A stretch of DNA of 64,000 nucleotides. Origin: Dimorphilus gyrociliatus. Lineage: Eukaryota > Animalia > Annelida. Shown one piece after another: positions 4,442 to 59,618 of this stretch. Under the pieces are notes generated by a model. That model saw nothing but the letters and a program-made list of their open reading frames with translations. It was not told the DNA's origin and did no database searches. Position numbers and translations under genes: made by a program. The stretch covers positions 1,302,001 through 1,366,000 of the forward strand of contig CAJFCJ010000001.1 in NCBI GenBank assembly GCA_904063045.1. Reading direction: 5' to 3'. Every line of letters starts with the position of its first letter. Position 1 is the first letter of the stretch.

Positions 4442-7400
4442 TTATTGTACACGGCAGTCGGCATTTCCATCTCTGTCAACAGCAATTTGTAGCGTACGAG
4501 CCACTGCTTTGCACAAATACGACATAGTTCCGTATCTTCCACTAGGCGCCGAATCATAAAAATGTTGGCAAATTCCCGCTACACCTCCACATTTCAACGG
4601 GTTTTGGCTGAATTTTGCGCAACATAGCAACACATCGCCTTCCATATGCTGCTGTTCATCTATAAAAATTGAATTAGCTCTCATAACGATATTAGTTATA
4701 TTTATTATCTGATCCCAACGACTGTTCACAGCGCCGTACTCTGCCACGAGAGATAAAACTGTAAGAGTTTCAACAGCCAACTGTCTAAGCTCGGGTTGAG
4801 TTACTCTGTTCAATGCTGCTTCAACTTGGAGCGCGAATTTCAATTCTCCTCTTGTCATTTCTTTTGTAAGGGATCTTTGTAGACTTGTTTCTTCAATTTG
4901 CAATCCATTACACTAGTTGGAACAATAGTAATAAAAGTCACAAGAATTAAATCAATTTAATAAAAGTACTTTTTCCAAAACCAGCCAAACGTCTGCATAA
5001 AATCCAACTGGTACACGATTTAACGAACCATCTAGTCTCCTTCTCCTTAGCCACTGGCCTTGTCTATCTGAGTCGCTAAGATCAGCTCCAGGCCCTACCG
5101 ACTCTTGCAGTTCCTGTATTTGACAATAAAAAACATTTAAATTAATCTAATTACTACTAGGGCGAAGAGAAGAAAGAGGTTTCTATTTAGTCTAAATCAA
5201 AAATACGTTATATGCATACATATTATTATGTCAATAATTAATTACATAAAAATATCAATGAATAGATATATATATATATATATACATATATACATATACA
5301 TATATACTGTATATATCTACATATACAAATACCGTTTGTTCTTCAATAAGATACTGTATACATATGCATTTACATGTATATAAATATATATATATACATA
5401 TATAATAAACGAAAAGCGTACTGAAAGATTGTGAATGACGTGCCGGTGCTCAAGAAGTATATTTTGACGAAAATCTAGAAAGCAAAGAAAATAAAACAAA
5501 TGCACATAAAGTAGCTATGTGAGATTGAAAAGTGCATAAGAGAAAGAGTATGAGACAAGCTAAGGCATTAAAGCATCCCAAGACTTACCGCTACCATTGA
5601 CGATCGTCTACTGCGAACTTTAGTCGTTGTACGACTACCTTCTCTTATCATATCACCCGCCGATATAAAGACGTTTTCAGCAGCTTAAAGCGCATATTAA
5701 AATCGGATATCAACCAACAATTTTAAGAATTAATCTCTACCAATTAATTATTTTAGGCTAAGCTATTTGAATTATTATAAAATAGTATAGGCCTCATTAC
5801 AAGTACCCTGACCTGCTTGTTATTACAAGATATTTTGCAACGAGGGTATAAGTATTCTGGTCTATACGTTTAATACATGTTAATAGCAATAGAAGTAAAT
5901 AAAGAATCATTAACAGTGCGGAATTAGTTGAAATAATTTTTACACCTTATATAAACTTGTCTTTCTTGTCCTTATAGTGCTGTGTTTTGATCTAGGTTCG
6001 GCTGGAACGATTCTTAAACTCGATCCCGCGCTAGAACCTGACGTAGTTTATATGAAAGAAATGATTGAAAAGATTTAACTGTTTCTTCTAATATTTTCCG
6101 TTTTTTTAATAATATTTTTTTTCTAAAAAATAATCTTTGAAATTTGAATCTTTTGTCAAATTAAATATCAAATAAAGAAACGCTTTGTTAAAAATTCTAA
6201 TAGAATTAACCAGAGATGTGTGTTTTTTCTTTCCTCTTTGTTAAATGAATAAATAGAAAGTCAGGATTCTCTCATTATCGTTACTTAATAAACATTGCAG
6301 AACCCGAATTAAAATGGACAAGTCCAAAAATAGCTTACCGGACGTTATGCCAAATTCTTTGCCGCTAAGTATATGATGAAGTAATGTTTTCATTTCGTAA
6401 GGACTTAAATTCAATAGCTGGTCAGATGCGTCGTCTCCTATATATTTTTCGTATAATAAATTATATAAATTATTCATTGACAATTATGTACAAAATACCA
6501 AATTACCCGAACACTTTAATGTCCTAGCTAATTCGGATGCCATCACTTGAATAATTAAACCAATTCTTAACCTCAACATTTCATGAAATAATTTCGGTTC
6601 TGTTCTAATAAACATGGCTAGATAAACCAAAAGTTCCTGCGTTAACATGGCAATGGACAAATCTCGACCACAAGCCTCATGTATCATATCGGCCAATTCG
6701 TCAGGAGGCAGAGGGCGAGTTATAATTTTTTCCCTCGGTTCGGGAGGTAGACCAACAGCTAATTGTTTTTGTCTGACAAGAATATCAGTAGCTGATAAGG
6801 CTAAATTTTCCACTTTCTTCCTAAGCATACCAGCTGTGTGTCTAACTAGCCACCACTGCTTTAAATCTCCGGCTCGGTCATATAATTCCGCTAATAGATC
6901 TCTAACTTTACAACTTCTATTAGGACCTTCTAAATTCGTTTCCCAATTTACTCCCTTATGGAGATACAAGTAGTAAATAATATCAGCTTGCTCATGTAAA
7001 CTTTCGCTATCTCTCAATTGATCCACCAAATCTATACAATCAATACCTTCATATAAGCTTTCGTTGTGATGAGTTATAGCGGTTGTTCCAGCAAGAACAG
7101 CTTTTAAATGAGATTTAGGTTGAAATAGATCTCGTTCGGGTGGCGTAAATGTAAGAGGACTACAAGGTGGTGTCGGGGATACATTTTCTGACGATGGAGT
7201 CTCTGCAACAAAAATTAAATGAGCTATATGTTGAAAACATCTTAATAAGTCGAAATTATTCAAATTCTCTCATTAGTTTCACAGTGAAATTTATTGAAGT
7301 GCTCAAAGAGTTGAAGAAAAATTACGAAAAGGTGAATATAAATTGAAGTGATTATTATAAAAGTATGTATAAGATATAAACTAATACTAAATGAAATAGA

Positions 7401-10400
7401 TTATATCTCTGCATGCTTAAGCAATCACCTCCAAAATCCTGTGCACCTGTCGGAAGCAGGTGTGATAAGTCTGAAAAATAATAGTTTAAAAGAAATAATA
7501 AAAAAGTCTAAAAAAGAATTAATTTCCTTCGTAGAGTCTATTGTTGTATTGAAGAAGAAAATTATGTAACTTAAGTGATAATTGAAAGTGAGAACAACGT
7601 AATTATAAGAGGTAAGGGATAGGAAATAAATAGAAAAAGGCAATTCTAATTTCAATTATTGATTGGCTTATGAAAGTGATATAGGAAAAAAATTTGACTC
7701 TATTTACCTCCAACGTCTTCGGGAGCAATCTGGATTGAGAGACTCTTCTTTAGGAAACCGGAAACTGTACTCTTTCTTCTAGCTCTTGGCTTTTTGACTT
7801 GGGAACACTTTCGAGAAATTGAATCGAGTATGCGATACGTTGATTTGGCACTGCTAACTTGAAATGCTCCAATATATTCCAATAAATTATCAACTTTAAA
7901 GGAAAATATCGAAAAATAGATGTTAGAAAAATAACATAATTGATAAAATTCATAATATATAAATCGTACTATCTGGCGAATCGTCAGCTTCTGTTAAATA
8001 AGTTAAACAAGTTGCGCATGAGGTATTCATAAAATCTTGTATAAAACCAAGTTGAACTCTATAAACAAAGTATTACCATTAACTAAATAAAATAATAATA
8101 TAAATATATATTGAGTAAAATTCACCTTGTTCCATTTATATAACCTGTCTGCAGTTTTTTCATAGTAGCTATGAGGGCAGGATGTAGATTATTCTTGAAA
8201 TCTGTTGAAAAGTTTATACTTTTATATAAAAAACAATATACCGATCACACCAACCATACGCTATACGAAAACAAGGAACAATGAAAATAGGTCTCCCCAT
8301 ACCCATCCATGAGTTTTTCAAATATAAAAGATTATTTTTGAAACCATCTATTAGATATTCAATATCATGCACCATATAGAAGGTATCAGCATCAGAGAAC
8401 TGCAAAGCGTCAGAAACTCATTCAGAGGGAAAGGACAGGAGAAATATTTTATTTAAAATGGAACATAGAATGTATACCGAAGTTGATTAAAGAGGTTTGA
8501 TTGCATAAAAAAAGATGCAAATTAAGAGTTTCTTTTAGTATTAAGCCTAAATAACAATCCAAAGCTAAACGATCTCGAATAAACAAAACAAATATGCCAT
8601 CCATTAGGAAACTACTTAAGAAATGAAAGGATAGTCTAATATCTTATAACTTAATCATTTTCTATAAAGTTGATTAATGCCTATCCTTAATTTCCCAGTT
8701 TTTGATACAATATTACAGGTGAACATCAATCATAATTTACCCAATAATGACTGCTTGATTGGGAACACCATTAGAGGCCTCCCAATATTGTTCCAGTATC
8801 TTTGTAAGTGTTGAACGTCTGTTTTGAGCATATCCAGCAGTAGTTCCAGATCAAGAGGTAAGTAAAATTCTTGCTTATCTACAAACTTTTTTGAATTTTC
8901 GATCGATATATATATTTTGTAATCAACCTCGATATAGAAGAGAAAATCCTAGAAAAATCTTTTACCTGAGGCATAAACACTAGAGTCTTATCTCCCAAAG
9001 TATAGAGTTTACTAGTTGCTAAAATGCCTGCCATTTCAGTCGGTCTTCCAGTAAGACCCAATTTAGAATTCTTTCCTGTAAGTACATTTGTAAATTATAA
9101 ATCCTCTCTCGTGCTTGTATATTTACTTACCCAAATGAGAGAAAATATGGCTTAATACTTTTGCAGGATAAACTTGAACGGGTGAAGCTTCCGCTAATGT
9201 TTGAACCTTAATATCGTTTTCCGCCAGCTTTTCTTGAATCTTTTCATCTTCTGCCAGAATAACAACTACAAAGAAAACAAAAAAAAATTGATATTAAACT
9301 TTAAAGCTATGTAAATAAATATAAATAGATTACCTTGAACAACTAAATCAGGCTTTTGTTCTGTTACTAATCTCCTATTTAAAGGATCAATTTCACCAGG
9401 TGATAAAAATCCCTATTGGAAAAACATATATCAATATTATTAATTAAACTGCCAAAAAATAAGTGGTTTACCTCCATCAGTAACTTGCATAAAATATATA
9501 ATGATTGTCCCCAAGTTTGAGGAACTTTACCAATTGGCTCTCTGATTTGACTGCCTGGATTGTAGCATTCTTCCTCAACTTTATGTGCTGGCACTCGGTA
9601 CATTTCGGGCATTAATTTTATACCATCCTCTCCTTTGATCATTAAACTTTCCAGTATTGTCATATATTTTTCAATATCAGCCTTAGTATCGTTAAAAATT
9701 GCATCCAATACAAAGAATGCAATAAATAAAGGCCATTCGCATTCGATATTCTCAAACATACTTAATTCCCACGGTTCGTAGTGTAATCTGTTAGGATCTT
9801 CTCTGGCTGTCTTGTATCCATCTCTAATGAATCTACAACATCCATATTCGCCCTAATATCGATATGCAAAAGTGAAAATAAATCGTAAATTGAACCAAAA
9901 TAATAAACAACTAGTACCATTAATTTATCAACAATAGTATTTTTCGTTAATTGTATTAAATCTTGATCATCAACCGCGAAAGCAGGATAGCTAATTATTC
10001 CCATAAGTGCGGCGTCGACCTCTTTCGAATTAGATTCTCGAGGTAAAACTGATTGAAGAATAGCTTGACATTGCTGGGCTTCATCTGGTAAAACGTGTAT
10101 GACGGAATAGGGTCCACCTCTAGCTCCGAACAGGTCTAGTTCATTCATAGCTTCTAGAGCAGCCTTCGCCATACCTATGGAGGTTGTATTCAATTCTGGT
10201 AGACCGTGGTTTGTCTTATCTCCCCTTTCCCAAATACCATAATCCTAATAAAAAATATTTGTGTTCCTAAATACTATTTCATTAAATGGTATGAAGGGAA
10301 TATTTACAGGAGTTCTATAGGCCGATTGAATATAAAATACTAAATTTTGAATGAAGGAGACTTCATCCATCGTGTATATAATTTGTAAACCGGAAGCAGT

Positions 10401-41231: not shown

Positions 41232-43597
41232 ATCTCTCTCTATTTCTTTCATTCATTCTTTCTTTCATTCTTTTGCCTCTCCATTATAATGAAATTAATA
41301 AAAGAGAACAAAAAAGAGGTAAAAAAAAATTAAAGGGAAAACACTTACGCCTGGTTTCCTGACCCTCCAAAAAGCTCGTTCTTGGCTATCCCTCACGACT
41401 TTATCAGCCTTTTTACATTCCTTTAACAATCTTTGAAAATAGAGAAGAAAAATAAGGTAAGTTAAAAAAGAAGGATGTTATATACTGTACTATACTATAT
41501 ATAATCATATATTATATAAATCATATGCTATGTTGATAAGGAGGAATAGAAATGATTAAATGAACGAAGAGAAATGAAGAAAAGAAAAGAAAAGAAAAGA
41601 GAAGAAAAGAGAAGAAAAAGAAAAGAAGAAAAAAAAGATAGTATAGGAAGGTGCTTTAGTTTAATATTTTCATTAATTGGTAGGAACAGAAGAAATTATT
41701 CATCTTACTTAACTTGCTCCTCGGCTTGCATGCGTATAAAATCCCATTTGTCGCACAATGTCTTTTGAAGTCTAGCGTGCTCGATCTGAGTCACGAAACA
41801 GCTTTTTATTATTATAACTATTATTGTAACTATTATTATTACTGTTATTATTATTTCTAATTATTATTTTTTTCATTTGTGTAACTATGAACATTAGAAG
41901 GAAAAAAAAACATAAAAATGTTAAATTAATACATGTATATTAATATCGTCATGTTCTCATTTTCGTATATATCTTTTCTATATAATTTAGATTGTCTCTG
42001 TATATTTGGTCAATAGTCAATTTCAAAGAGAATTAATTAAGAGTATAGTATGTACGCAATGAAAGTGCATGCAATATAAACACAACTGTAAATCTTATCG
42101 GCTTAAACAGTCTTTTGTGTTTGTTTTTTTGTTTGTTTTTTTCCTTCCATATCCTTTAAAATAACATTTAAATTAGAGGATTATAGAGATTTCTTTTAGG
42201 AATCATTATTAAAACAAAAAGAGATGTAAATAAAAGGAAAGTTTTAAGAGTTTAGTTTTAAAAAGAAATATGAAAATATTTACCAATTCGAAGTCTTCTA
42301 AGCCGTGCTTCTGCTTGTTGCGCATCATGCGTTTAGTCAAGTAGATTGCTTTGGAAAGAGAGAGAAAAAAAAGAAAAAGAGTAACAAGCTACCTTTCATA
42401 TGGAAATCTATGATGATTGAATACCGTAATAGACGTCGTCAGGTTTACTATTATAGGATGGCCAGAAGGCGGGAGTCTGAGTTTAAAAATAGAATGAAAA
42501 AGAGGAACAATAAGGTTTATAAATTCATTAATATTTAAACAAAATCCGTCTCAACTTACTTGGAATCTGTAAAGAGATCCGTCGTCCCTAACCTGCAATG
42601 ATTTTGTATCCGTAACCGGGAATAGATAACCGTATTGGCATAGTAAGGACGCCAAATGCATAGCTTCGGCTGAATCTTCGATATTTAACTTTTCGCATAG
42701 CCATTCGACAACGTCATAACCTACGAAAGAAAAAATCTCCTTTAATTTATAACGAGTTAAAAGGTTAATGGAGAACCGGAAAAAAGGGCTAAACGGTCGC
42801 TCCCGTAAAAGTAATTTGCCTTTTGGTTTGTAGAAGTAAAAGAGAAAAGAGGAGAAAGAAATCCAAAGATAATATAAACGGTTATATGGGTATAAAAAAC
42901 TGAAGATAAACAAAAAACAAACTGGCTGTTGTATAATAATCGATATAGCTACTGCTGACGTCACGAATCGACCAAAGGCGAACAACATGACCAGTATATA
43001 CATATATATATATATATATATACATATGCATATGTAGTAATTTCGGGGCAAATAGCCCGAATCGAGTAATTACGCTCGATTTAGAAAAGACGAAACGAAT
43101 GCTTATCTAATAAAAAATAAAATTAGCAAACCTGTAAAGGCGCATGGAATTGTCGTTAGGAAGATCTTCTGGCATCTCACAGGTACTCCCGTGTTGTCTT
43201 GTTGCATCCATTCCACTATTTCGCTCATCTGTATTTTTTTATTAATAATAGACCTATTAGATATAGAAGAAGAACAAGCGATTATCCGTTAGATTTGAGT
43301 TTTTTTGTTTGAATAATAGGAAACTATTTTAAGCGTCGAATACAAATGCATTTTTAACGAAAGAGAGAAAAAGAGCGAAAAGATGGACAAATCATTATTA
43401 TTTTTTTAATAAAAGAAAAATATATATAGGATTATAGGGTTTACGTAGTCTACTTAATGTCCTATGTACACGCTTAATTGCTTGGTATTATTTAACCTGG
43501 TAATAATTAATGTGCTGTGCTGGACTTATCCTTAAGACCTTGAAACGGAAAATATAGCTTTAAAATCAATAATTCCCTTAAGGTATATGCAGCACTG

Positions 43598-43655
<58 letters not shown>

Positions 43656-45621
43656 CAAACATACAAACCAACACAAACACATTCATATTTATTTATTTAT
43701 TTATTATATTTCTATATATCTAAAGCTCGTTAGCATGAAATTCCCTTTGGCGGCTAACCTAAAGTTCATTGTAACAGTAGAATCTTGATAATAGTGTAAA
43801 TTGCTAATTAAGATAAACAAATATGTTCTTTTATATTTTTAATATATAATAATTAAAAAGAGAAATAGAATAGAAAATGTAAAAAAAAAAAAAATTGGAA
43901 GAAAAAACAATTTAAAGTTTTTTTCAACGGAAAATAAAAAGTATTTTCTTTTTTTTTATTAAAAACAAAAAAAGTCAATGATTTTATTTTAGTGGAAAAA
44001 CTTACAACCAAAAAAAAAAAGAAACAAAATGAAAGAAAAAGTTTGGAAAAGGGGAAAAAAAAACTTTTATTCCATCTGGATAAAATAAACAAAGGGAAAA
44101 AAATTGATTTATATGAAAAAGGTTCAATTTGATGAGGGATGTATTTTGTTTGTTCTAAATGAAAATCATATTGAAGACTATGTATAAATATATAACACAT
44201 TCGAGTATATTATATATACAGTATATATATATACAGTATATATATAAAATAAACAGTCATTACCATTATACTATATATTTTCCATAAATGCGTCTATTAT
44301 AACCTTTTTCTACGAAATTTTAATATAATTGTAGTATTTTAACAATAAGCCTTATATTGCATATAAATAAAGCAATTAAAAACATGATACGATAGCTTCG
44401 GATTATTCTTAATTCATGTTTAATATAAATTTTTGTTTTTATTTTTTCTTTTCGCTCCTACTTTATACATTTTCTCTCTCTCTCTCTCTCTCTCGTTCCA
44501 GACGTATAATGTAGAATATATCTCCTTCAATAGGCCTATACGAATAATCTAATAAGCTAAATTACACTTTTCTCACTTTAAAGAAAACATTAATGCTATT
44601 TTTCGAGATTTTGAAAGCTTTATACCTCGGATAGAGCATTTTTTTTTATATTATCAAGAATACAATCTTAATTAACAAATTCACTTTACCACACTTCATG
44701 AATTCTTAATATGGAAAAAAAAAGGGAGAGAGAGAGAGAGAGAGAAAAAGATAAATTGAAGGAAAAGAAACAACGTGTCTGCTTTTTTTCAAATTAGTTA
44801 ACTAATTAACTATCTAAGATAATTGTAAGAAATAATGGCAGATTGTTGATAGGATTGAGAATTGTCAAACAGTTGTAGAATTTTTACGAAATTCATCAAA
44901 GCAGTAACGAAGTACTCACTCAACCGTGAAATTAACAGTAATGTTTAGTAAAAAAAAAAGTGCAGTGGACATATTTTTATGTATCTACTTAGTTTCTGAT
45001 ATATTCTTTCTTATGTAATGCTTATAATGTTTGTCTATATATTATTTATATTTTTCAAGGTTATTTCCTGGAGCGGTTTATTGTTTTATAATACTGTACA
45101 AATCTTTATCTGTCTATCTATTCTTCATTATTATTATTATCGTCATTTTTTTTGTTCTTTTTCTTCTTTGTCTTCATCTTATCGCAGTCAATCTTTCTCT
45201 CTCTCTCTTTTCCTAATTAACTTATTTAAACTTCTAAAAATGAAAACTGACACAAAATTTAATTAGATTAAAATTTTATGAATAATGAATAGAAATTTAT
45301 TAGCTCATTTTTTCTCAGTATTATATATATATTGTTTTATATATTTAATAATAAATAGTTAAGTAAACGTTCCTTAAAATAGAAGTAATTGCTTTATTGA
45401 TTGTTTTTAATCGATAAGAATGGGGAAGGGAACAAGTTTTTAAAAAATCGTTCGGGCTGAGAGCTTATTATAAAAACTTATCTGACAGAGTGAGATAGAG
45501 AGAGAGCGGGAAGAGGAGAGGAGAAGGCGAAGAGAGGAGAGAAGAGAGGGAAGCGAGGGAAGGAGGAGAGAGAAAAACAGAAAGACGAAGAGAGATAGAT
45601 AGATAGATAGATAGATAGATG

Positions 45622-45668
<47 letters not shown>

Positions 45669-58130: not shown

Positions 58131-58865
58131 CTTCAAAAAAAAAATCGCGCTATGACTGAACAATTGCTTTAACGAACCGATTGTGTGCTTCTAATTGTGG
58201 TCTCGGATGACAATCTTTAAAAGACAATAAGCTTTTTCGGGTATCTTTTTAATAGTTTTTCTTAAAGAATTATTATCAATTGTTAAAGCACTCTGTATAC
58301 GGAGAATAGAACTTTAGTGCATGAAACGTAATCGAACAAATCGCATAATTTCGCTCATATTCATAAAAAGAGAAACTACTCAATTTTTTCAACTGCTCTG
58401 TCATAAGGTATTTATTTTTAAACAAAAAAGTAAAGCTAACGCTACGCAAGTTATTCTCAAAATAGAATACATTTATTAAGGCAACAGTTCATTTTATATT
58501 ACTCGTGTTACTTTTGCTCGGTTGAGCAGAATTTTTAAGACAATACAAGGTATAAAATCACATCACATTACTATTCATACAGTACATCCTGACAATTAAC
58601 GTACAATTTTATAGTTTCAATATATCTCTTGTTTATTTTTCAATTAATTATTATGCACTATTTAATAGGTTTGGTATTCTTCATTAATATCCTTTTTTAC
58701 CGGGAGATATTCGTTTAAATGGATATCTTAAGCAATAAATTTTATGCATAATTATGATATTAATTGAAAAAAAAGAACGTTTATACAAATATCTATGTTA
58801 GACTGAGGTTGTAAGTTTTATAGAGTCACAATTTTTGAGAATAGATGGTCGCATTTAAAAAAAAG

Positions 58866-58889: not shown

Positions 58890-59618
58890 AATTTCGATTA
58901 CAACCTGTTGTTGTATAACTCTTACCTACATCCCTTCTTTAGAGACAGTTCCACAATAATATACCCTTACCCATCTGGAAAATATTTTGCCTGAAAGTTT
59001 ATAAAGAATGTAGCCTCGGTCTGACATACAGTACACATATTTAGTCCGTTTTAAAGTAAACCACTTTTATAGGTTAGTCATTCTATGGCACTAGTTTTCT
59101 AGAATAAAAACTTTCACTGGCAGAAATTGATGATTAATTTAAAAAAAAAAGGCTTTTAATTTTATACGTAAATTCTTTCCTATTAAAACAAGTCATTATT
59201 ATGAATGGATCTTCCTTAAAACGGAATATACAGTAGCGATAAGCTACAAGGAGCACCACGTTTTTTTTATAAAAGTCAAAGTTTTCTTTAGCTTTAGCAT
59301 GAGCAAGATGTTTTTATTAACGAAGATAATTTACCTATCTTCAATTGAGAATTGATAATTATTTAATACAAACTATTCTTACTAAATTATTATTTCCATT
59401 GTAATAAACAAAGATTTTATATCTCAATTAAAGATAGGTAAATTATCTTCATTAATAAAAACATCTTGCTCATGTCGAAAAAAGGGATGCAAGTGTCCTT
59501 TTAGCTTATTTGTACTGTTTACCTTATCAGAAATAAAGAATACAAAGTCAGAGAAACACTGGAAGAAACTTGTAAAAATGAACACCCAAAAAAAAACAAA
59601 AAGAAACGAAACGTAGCG

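Follow-up and report, generated by a model that had tools for sequence, protein, structure and literature searches.

A conserved intronic RNA helix predicted to guide the choice between two mutually exclusive exons of an annelid phosphorylase kinase alpha gene

Long-range RNA pairings have been reviewed for Dscam1, 14-3-3xi, MHC, SF1, DNM1, PLP1, and ATE1, all of them in insects or mammals (PMC11802352). The selection of mutually exclusive exons by an RNA helix has been established by experiment in insects (Dscam1, 14-3-3xi, Mhc, and srp), and has been reported for some mammalian genes, ATE1 and DNM1 among them (PMC11802352). For example, in the two-exon mutually exclusive cluster of Drosophila serpent (srp; exons 4.1 and 4.2), an upstream pairing designated stem I (Ud-Ds) is formed by a conserved element that follows the upstream constitutive exon and a second conserved element located between the variants, by which the proximal exon is enclosed. 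Through this upstream pairing the distal exon is included; its use is lowered in disruptive mutants and restored in compensatory mutants, while a second, competing downstream pairing (Us-Dd) activates the proximal exon (Yue et al. 2016, PMC4691838). Docking/selector systems are defined by several selectors that compete for a single docking site (PMC6071210). The exon 6 cluster of Dscam1 (Graveley 2005; PMC6071210, PMC11802352) has its docking element just past the constitutive exon and one selector before each variant, and the pairing draws the chosen exon close to the upstream donor. Human ATE1 exons 7a and 7b (elements R1-R5, PMC7797038) form a two-exon pair with conserved intronic complements in a non-neuronal enzyme gene, in which two elements compete for a third and an ultra-long-range helix spans 30 kb. 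Moreover, a structure masks the branch site in the case of the SF3B3 poison exon (PMC11802352). The literature search found no paper that ties phosphorylase kinase alpha to mutually exclusive exons or to RNA pairing.

This work concerns a 17-bp intronic complementarity, designated H1, in the gene for the alpha regulatory subunit of phosphorylase kinase (PHKA) on the minus strand of a 64-kb stretch of annelid DNA, the whole of which is referred to as the window. Two homologous exons, A and B, constitute a real and expressed mutually exclusive pair in this gene, and the arms of H1 are located in the introns on either side of exon A (Table 1). On the basis of the conservation of these arms, the rarity of their complementarity, and the predicted folding of the transcript, H1 is rather likely to be a functional long-range RNA helix of the PHKA pre-mRNA that favours exon B.

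Among the described systems, stem I of srp appears to be the closest analogue of H1, since both belong to a two-exon mutually exclusive cluster and in both an element behind the upstream constitutive exon pairs with an element between the variants, enclosing the proximal exon. The upstream docking-selector pairing of the bidirectional srp model is present in PHKA, whereas its second pairing is not, and intron 3 is only 53 nt long here. In further distinction from srp, the introns of PHKA are considerably shorter, the likely branch point coincides with part of the docking arm, the host is an annelid, and the effect of H1 on splicing is a prediction. Comparison with the Dscam1 exon 6 type reveals tandem homologous exons of equal length and a conserved docking site in PHKA as well, and likewise a predicted approach of the chosen exon to the upstream donor upon pairing; multiple selectors are not found, as PHKA has a conserved selector for exon B only and none for exon A. 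With ATE1 the locus shares the two-exon pair, the non-neuronal enzyme gene, and the conserved intronic complements, but in place of competing elements and a 30-kb helix it has a single 17-bp helix over 430 nt. The masking of a branch site would be shared with SF3B3, although the branch point of PHKA is a putative one, placed by a yUnAy motif. By analogy, H1 would work like the upstream half of the docking/selector and bidirectional systems, in a simpler form. An earlier note on this DNA, which was made from the sequence, had proposed competing intronic pairing; one conserved docking/selector helix was indeed found, whereas a set of competing selectors and a downstream pairing were not.

The assignment of the gene to PHKA follows from a downstream exon of 259 aa that matches proteins named phosphorylase b kinase regulatory subunit alpha and contains Pfam domains PF00723 and PF19292. 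Exon A corresponds to residues 524-571 of human PHKA1 (match to 8jfk_M, E 1.3e-8), and exon B to residues 581-619 of PHKB, the stretch that is homologous to the match of exon A. The PHKA gene is AT-rich and compact in this organism, matches were found in marine and coral metatranscriptomes, and molluscs rank among the closest named protein matches, all of which is in keeping with an annelid source.

Analysis of RNA contigs revealed both exons between the same flanking exons. In run X4, the sequence of which is identical to that of the window, a 202-nt unitig joins the upstream exon, exon A, and the downstream exon at a depth of 314, and a second unitig joins the upstream exon, exon B, and the downstream exon at a depth of 189. 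Exons A and B were both found spliced in organism C (run X6), exon B was joined to both flanking exons in organism D (run X8), and a contig of marine metatranscriptome X9 links exon B to the downstream exon. Among the RNA contigs of the four runs, no junction between A and B was encountered. Since the RNA contains either A or B at one and the same place, and the two are not joined to each other, the pair is real and expressed, and the mutual exclusivity that the earlier note had suggested for it is confirmed by these contigs. Translation of the spliced products indicated that exon A alone or exon B alone keeps the reading frame, while inclusion of both exons or of neither leads to premature stops because both are 145 nt long, so that the frame, too, supports the exclusive use of the two exons in the mRNA. 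By unitig depth, which is a rough measure, exon A was at least as abundant as exon B in two runs (314 versus 189, and 61 versus 41).

Exon B stands out in the comparison with L001, a contig of another species, by a nucleotide identity of 96.6%, while exon A reaches 87.6% and eight other exons 78-90%. Together with its weak donor GUUGGU, this outlying identity marks exon B as a regulated exon, and its synonymous sites are under strong constraint. The RNA-like run of organism C contained an unspliced contig (8388-8770) over intron 2 only, at a depth of 11.7 versus 41-61 for spliced contigs, and no unspliced contig over introns 1 or 3; removal of intron 2 may perhaps be slow in this organism.

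Table 1. Positions of the exons, introns, helix arms, and neighbouring elements of the PHKA locus in the window, and of the tandem exons of distant PHKA loci (positions in the respective contigs).
Feature	Position	Strand	Remarks
Upstream constitutive exon	8966..9074	-	Donor GU 8965-8964; RNA joints 8399>8966, 8885>8966
Intron 1, 80 nt	8886..8965	-	Carries docking arm; 80-nt skip in X4 contigs
Docking arm of H1, UAUAUCGAGGUUGAUUA	8920..8936	-	In intron 1; conserved block reaches 8939
Exon A, 145 nt, PHKA1-like	8741..8885	-	RNA contig upstream exon-A-downstream exon; A-only product in frame
Intron 2, 341 nt	8400..8740	-	Contains hairpin H2, non-conserved partial selector copy, and selector arm; alignment blocks; unspliced X6 contig
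Hairpin H2	8612..8700	-	Conserved stem arms 8700-8678 and ~8634-8612; variable ~44-nt loop
Partial second selector copy, UAAUCAACUUU	8666..8676	-	Direct repeat D8; in H2 loop
Selector arm of H1, UAAUCAACUUCGGUAUA	8473..8489	-	In intron 2, 73 nt before exon B; conserved block 8491-8473
Exon B, 145 nt, homologous to exon A	8255..8399	-	Weak donor GUUGGU; RNA contigs
Intron 3, 53 nt	8202..8254	-	53-nt skip in RNA contigs
Downstream constitutive exon	8126..8201	-	RNA joints 8201>8255, 8201>8741
Tandem exons (L004, L006) and B-type exon (L008) of distant loci	L004 5554-5698, 5927-6071; L006 3597-3741, 3954-4098; L008 463-609		

H1 is an unbroken 17-bp complementarity in which 8936-8920 pairs with 8489-8473 through 15 Watson-Crick pairs and two G-U pairs (U8932-G8477 and G8928-U8481), with all 17 positions pairing exactly where the earlier note had located the duplex. 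Its arms were also recovered by an inverted-repeat finder (inverted repeat I3), with 430 nt between them. The docking arm starts 29 nt past the first base of intron 1 and ends 34 nt before exon A, while the selector arm is located 73 nt from the exon B acceptor and 251 nt from the exon A donor. The RNA joints hereby bear out the proposed placement of the docking arm in an 80-nt intron and set the distance from the selector to the exon B acceptor, which had been put at about 75 nt, at 73 nt. The isolated duplex has an energy of -19.9 kcal/mol on the sense strand versus -11.9 kcal/mol on the antisense strand, because both wobbles turn into A-C mismatches in the latter, and the argument that these wobbles point to RNA of the transcribed strand thus holds modestly. 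No other strong partner for either arm was found within the gene.

The frequency of such helices was determined in shuffled sequences and in the window itself. A continuous helix of at least 17 bp between the two introns occurred in 7 of 2000 dinucleotide shuffles in which G-U pairs were allowed, and an energy of -19.9 kcal/mol was reached in 0 of 300 mononucleotide shuffles. Whole-intron RNAduplex, which permits huge loops, gave no difference from shuffles (665 of 2000 were as good), and continuous-helix statistics were used in its place. On both strands of the whole 64-kb window, four helices of at least 17 bp with loops of 60-1500 nt were encountered after removal of microsatellite arms; a helix like H1 is therefore uncommon in the window, though not unique. 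Since comparable helices occur a few times per window, it is conservation that decides the matter. Random sets of five blocks, with the observed sizes and the intron composition, reached 17 bp in 0 of 20,000 trials, with a maximum of 16, and the complementarity between the conserved blocks is not by chance.

Several other structures were encountered during these scans. Long (CT)n/(GA)n and (TA)n/(TG)n microsatellites at 44470-45665 and 42994-43652 swamp naive helix scans of the window. A perfect 53-bp inverted repeat (59298-59350 and 59422-59474) with a 71-nt loop, at -78 kcal/mol as RNA, may be a hairpin element or the end pair of a small transposon, and it is adjoined by a 20-bp helix on the plus strand (58794-58813 with 59009-59028) that includes five G-U pairs. 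Within the PHKA gene, a 15-bp helix on the minus strand (5085-5071 with 4723-4709, -21.3 kcal/mol) was set aside as probably due to chance, its upstream arm having no counterpart in L001. A search of Rfam yielded nothing relevant, with one chance match at E 0.74.

Conservation of the arms was assessed in L001, a Logan contig that was reached via protein P0001 (95% identity with the 259-aa exon) and that is colinear with the whole gene of the window. Identity between the window and L001 amounts to 66% in intron 1 (54% outside the docking block), 65% in intron 2, and 62% in intron 3. In these diverged introns, the docking block of 20 nt (8939-8920) and the selector block of 19 nt (8491-8473) are both 100% identical and bordered by diverged sequence on both sides, and the arms are spaced by 426 nt in L001 versus 430 nt in the window. 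Moreover, the unspliced contig of organism C has 29 listed substitutions in intron 2, none of which fall in 8473-8491, while positions 8468, 8472, and 8492 do change; the selector is very likely to be fully identical in organism C, as judged from a contig of which 3 of 32 differences are unlisted. The docking arm was compared with one relative, L001; of the four runs, three gave none but spliced contigs, and X6 adds the single unspliced contig, which spans intron 2 with the selector. A scan of JGI metagenome contigs with exon A peptides found no further relatives. No covariation or compensatory change is visible between the window and L001, because the arms never vary and all 17 pairs are identical. 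The expectation that relatives would preserve the two elements is borne out for both arms in L001, although not in the form of compensatory substitutions, and the distinction between pairing and two linear motifs is argued from complementarity instead.

Folding of approximately 0.9 kb of pre-mRNA, a check that had been suggested in the earlier note, resulted in a predicted ensemble that is dominated by H1 in the window as well as in L001. The pairs of H1 have probabilities of 0.77-0.999 (window) and 0.90-1.0 (L001), and the helix is present in the minimum free energy fold, the centroid fold, and the two-species consensus fold, while the region as a whole does not stand out in folding energy (z -0.15). 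Besides H1, the consensus fold contains approximately 20 pairs of hairpin H2 with one one-sided change, and this hairpin has a fold z-score of -1.6 for the window and -4.1 for L001. The partial selector copy in the loop of H2 pairs over 11 bp with the docking arm (-9.8 kcal/mol); it was rejected as a competing selector, since it follows exon A rather than preceding an exon and is absent from L001. A downstream pairing comparable to stem II was likewise rejected, as none is conserved between the window and L001: the strongest helices that intron 2 can form with intron 3 or with intron 4 are at -6.7 kcal/mol or weaker in the window, and they differ between the species. The docking core GAG/GUUGAU resembles the exon B donor AUG/GUUGGU, and the selector can therefore pair with the exon B 5' splice site as well, over 7 bp in the window (8247-8256 with 8478-8484) and over 10 bp in L001 (4902-4911 with 4672-4681). 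This splice site may, speculatively, be a weak competitor for the selector.

The only yUnAy motif of intron 1 in the window, UUGAU, is located inside the docking arm, with its A at 8923 (approximately -38), and on basis of this motif the pairing would probably hide the branch point of exon A. Upon formation of H1, exon A and both its splice sites would be enclosed in a loop of approximately 430 nt, the likeliest branch point of the intron of exon A would be buried in the stem, and the path from the upstream donor to the exon B acceptor would be shortened from 566 to approximately 100 nt. The proposal of the earlier note that the pairing sequesters exon A and brings the upstream donor near the exon B acceptor agrees with this arrangement and with the predicted fold. 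From this geometry we infer the direction of the effect, namely that exon B would be used when H1 is formed. When H1 is absent, splicing from the upstream donor would remove the short 80-nt intron and take up exon A, and exon B, the donor of which is weak, would be skipped. Formation of the helix in vivo is a prediction. Equilibrium folding predicts its near-constant presence, which does not fit the two runs in which exon A equals or exceeds exon B in abundance, and formation of the helix must accordingly be limited and gated by co-transcriptional kinetics or by proteins.

The two conserved blocks could also be independent, single-stranded linear splicing signals of which the complementarity is incidental, i.e., the docking block would supply a branch point or enhancer to exon A, and the selector block would be a silencer or enhancer, bound by a protein, in front of exon B. 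The presence of the sole branch-point-like motif of intron 1 in the docking arm would fit such signals, as would the lack of covariation and the occurrence in intron 2 of other conserved blocks that have no long-range partner. However, linear signals would leave unexplained why conservation and pairing extend over nearly the same nucleotides and why 20 nt are conserved, which is far more than a branch point needs. Both mismatches of the inverted repeat in DNA are, moreover, G-U pairs on the sense strand, and not one of the 20,000 random block sets matched the 17 bp, which together make this explanation quite unlikely. A coincidence of patchy intron conservation with a chance helix that has no function deserves even less credence and is judged highly improbable. 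It could appeal to the few comparable helices elsewhere in the window and to the non-conserved 15-bp helix of the same gene, but a 17-mer placed in introns 1 and 2 would lie entirely within a perfect block in an estimated ~4% of cases, which for both arms would come to ~0.2%, the helix itself is rare under shuffling, and the selector is conserved in a second relative.

Alternatively, the helix may be real and have another role, either in the formation of a 145-nt circular RNA from exon A by back-splicing, as intronic complements around an exon bring about elsewhere, or in fidelity against the joining of A to B, instead of in the setting of the A:B ratio. With one arm on each side of a single exon, H1 has the layout that classically promotes circularisation, and the lack of an A-B junction contig would be in line with such another role. 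Contrary to circularisation, no backward joint was present in the four runs, as read from contigs in which rare forms are dropped, and the position of the selector, much nearer to the exon B acceptor than to the exon A donor, fits approximation to exon B better. Such another role is considered improbable; circularisation would, moreover, also skip exon A, and in that respect it overlaps with the preferred explanation, a helix that favours exon B.

Tandem exons at the same position were also encountered in distant PHKA loci. Two tandem 145-nt exons are present in L004/L005 and in L006/L007, and one B-type exon in L008, while the mite-like locus L003 has one exon copy only. The proteins of L004/L005, L006/L007, and L008 are approximately 76% identical to a Musca fragment, and are arthropod-like by protein identity. 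The same helix system was rejected for L004 and L006, in which no significant helix was obtained between intron 1 and intron 2 (p ~0.08 and ~0.19, respectively, for the best ones). The intron between the alternative exons of L006 (3742-3953) contains three (U)GCAUG motifs (Rbfox-type), which together with the lack of a significant helix suggests a different control in that lineage. The worm exon B has 11-15 of 48 identities to everything, and 48 residues do not discriminate for or against its orthology to the distant B-type exon or a duplication shared with the worm. The PHKA exon pair may be old or repeatedly duplicated.

These findings indicate that an invertebrate PHKA gene has two alternative exons under regulation, at the place that corresponds to residues 524-571 of human PHKA1. 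What is new here is the probable occurrence of a known helix mechanism, at the strength argued above, in an annelid and in a metabolic gene. In a broader and tentative reading, which we regard as possible but doubtful, helix-guided exon choice would be a regular device of annelids, either ancestral to protostomes or repeatedly invented, and the PHKA pair would be an old protostome feature of which the control has been rewired, with a helix in dinophilids versus protein motifs elsewhere. If that reading is true, the locus would represent a minimal short-intron model, in which a 17-bp helix with a loop of 430 nt is anchored in a docking intron of 80 nt. The PHKA case would offer an unusually compact system that fits a minigene of approximately 900 nt. 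Finally, a conserved annelid case would extend the mechanism beyond the taxa in which it is known, and would tie exon-choosing helices to a gene of glycogen metabolism.
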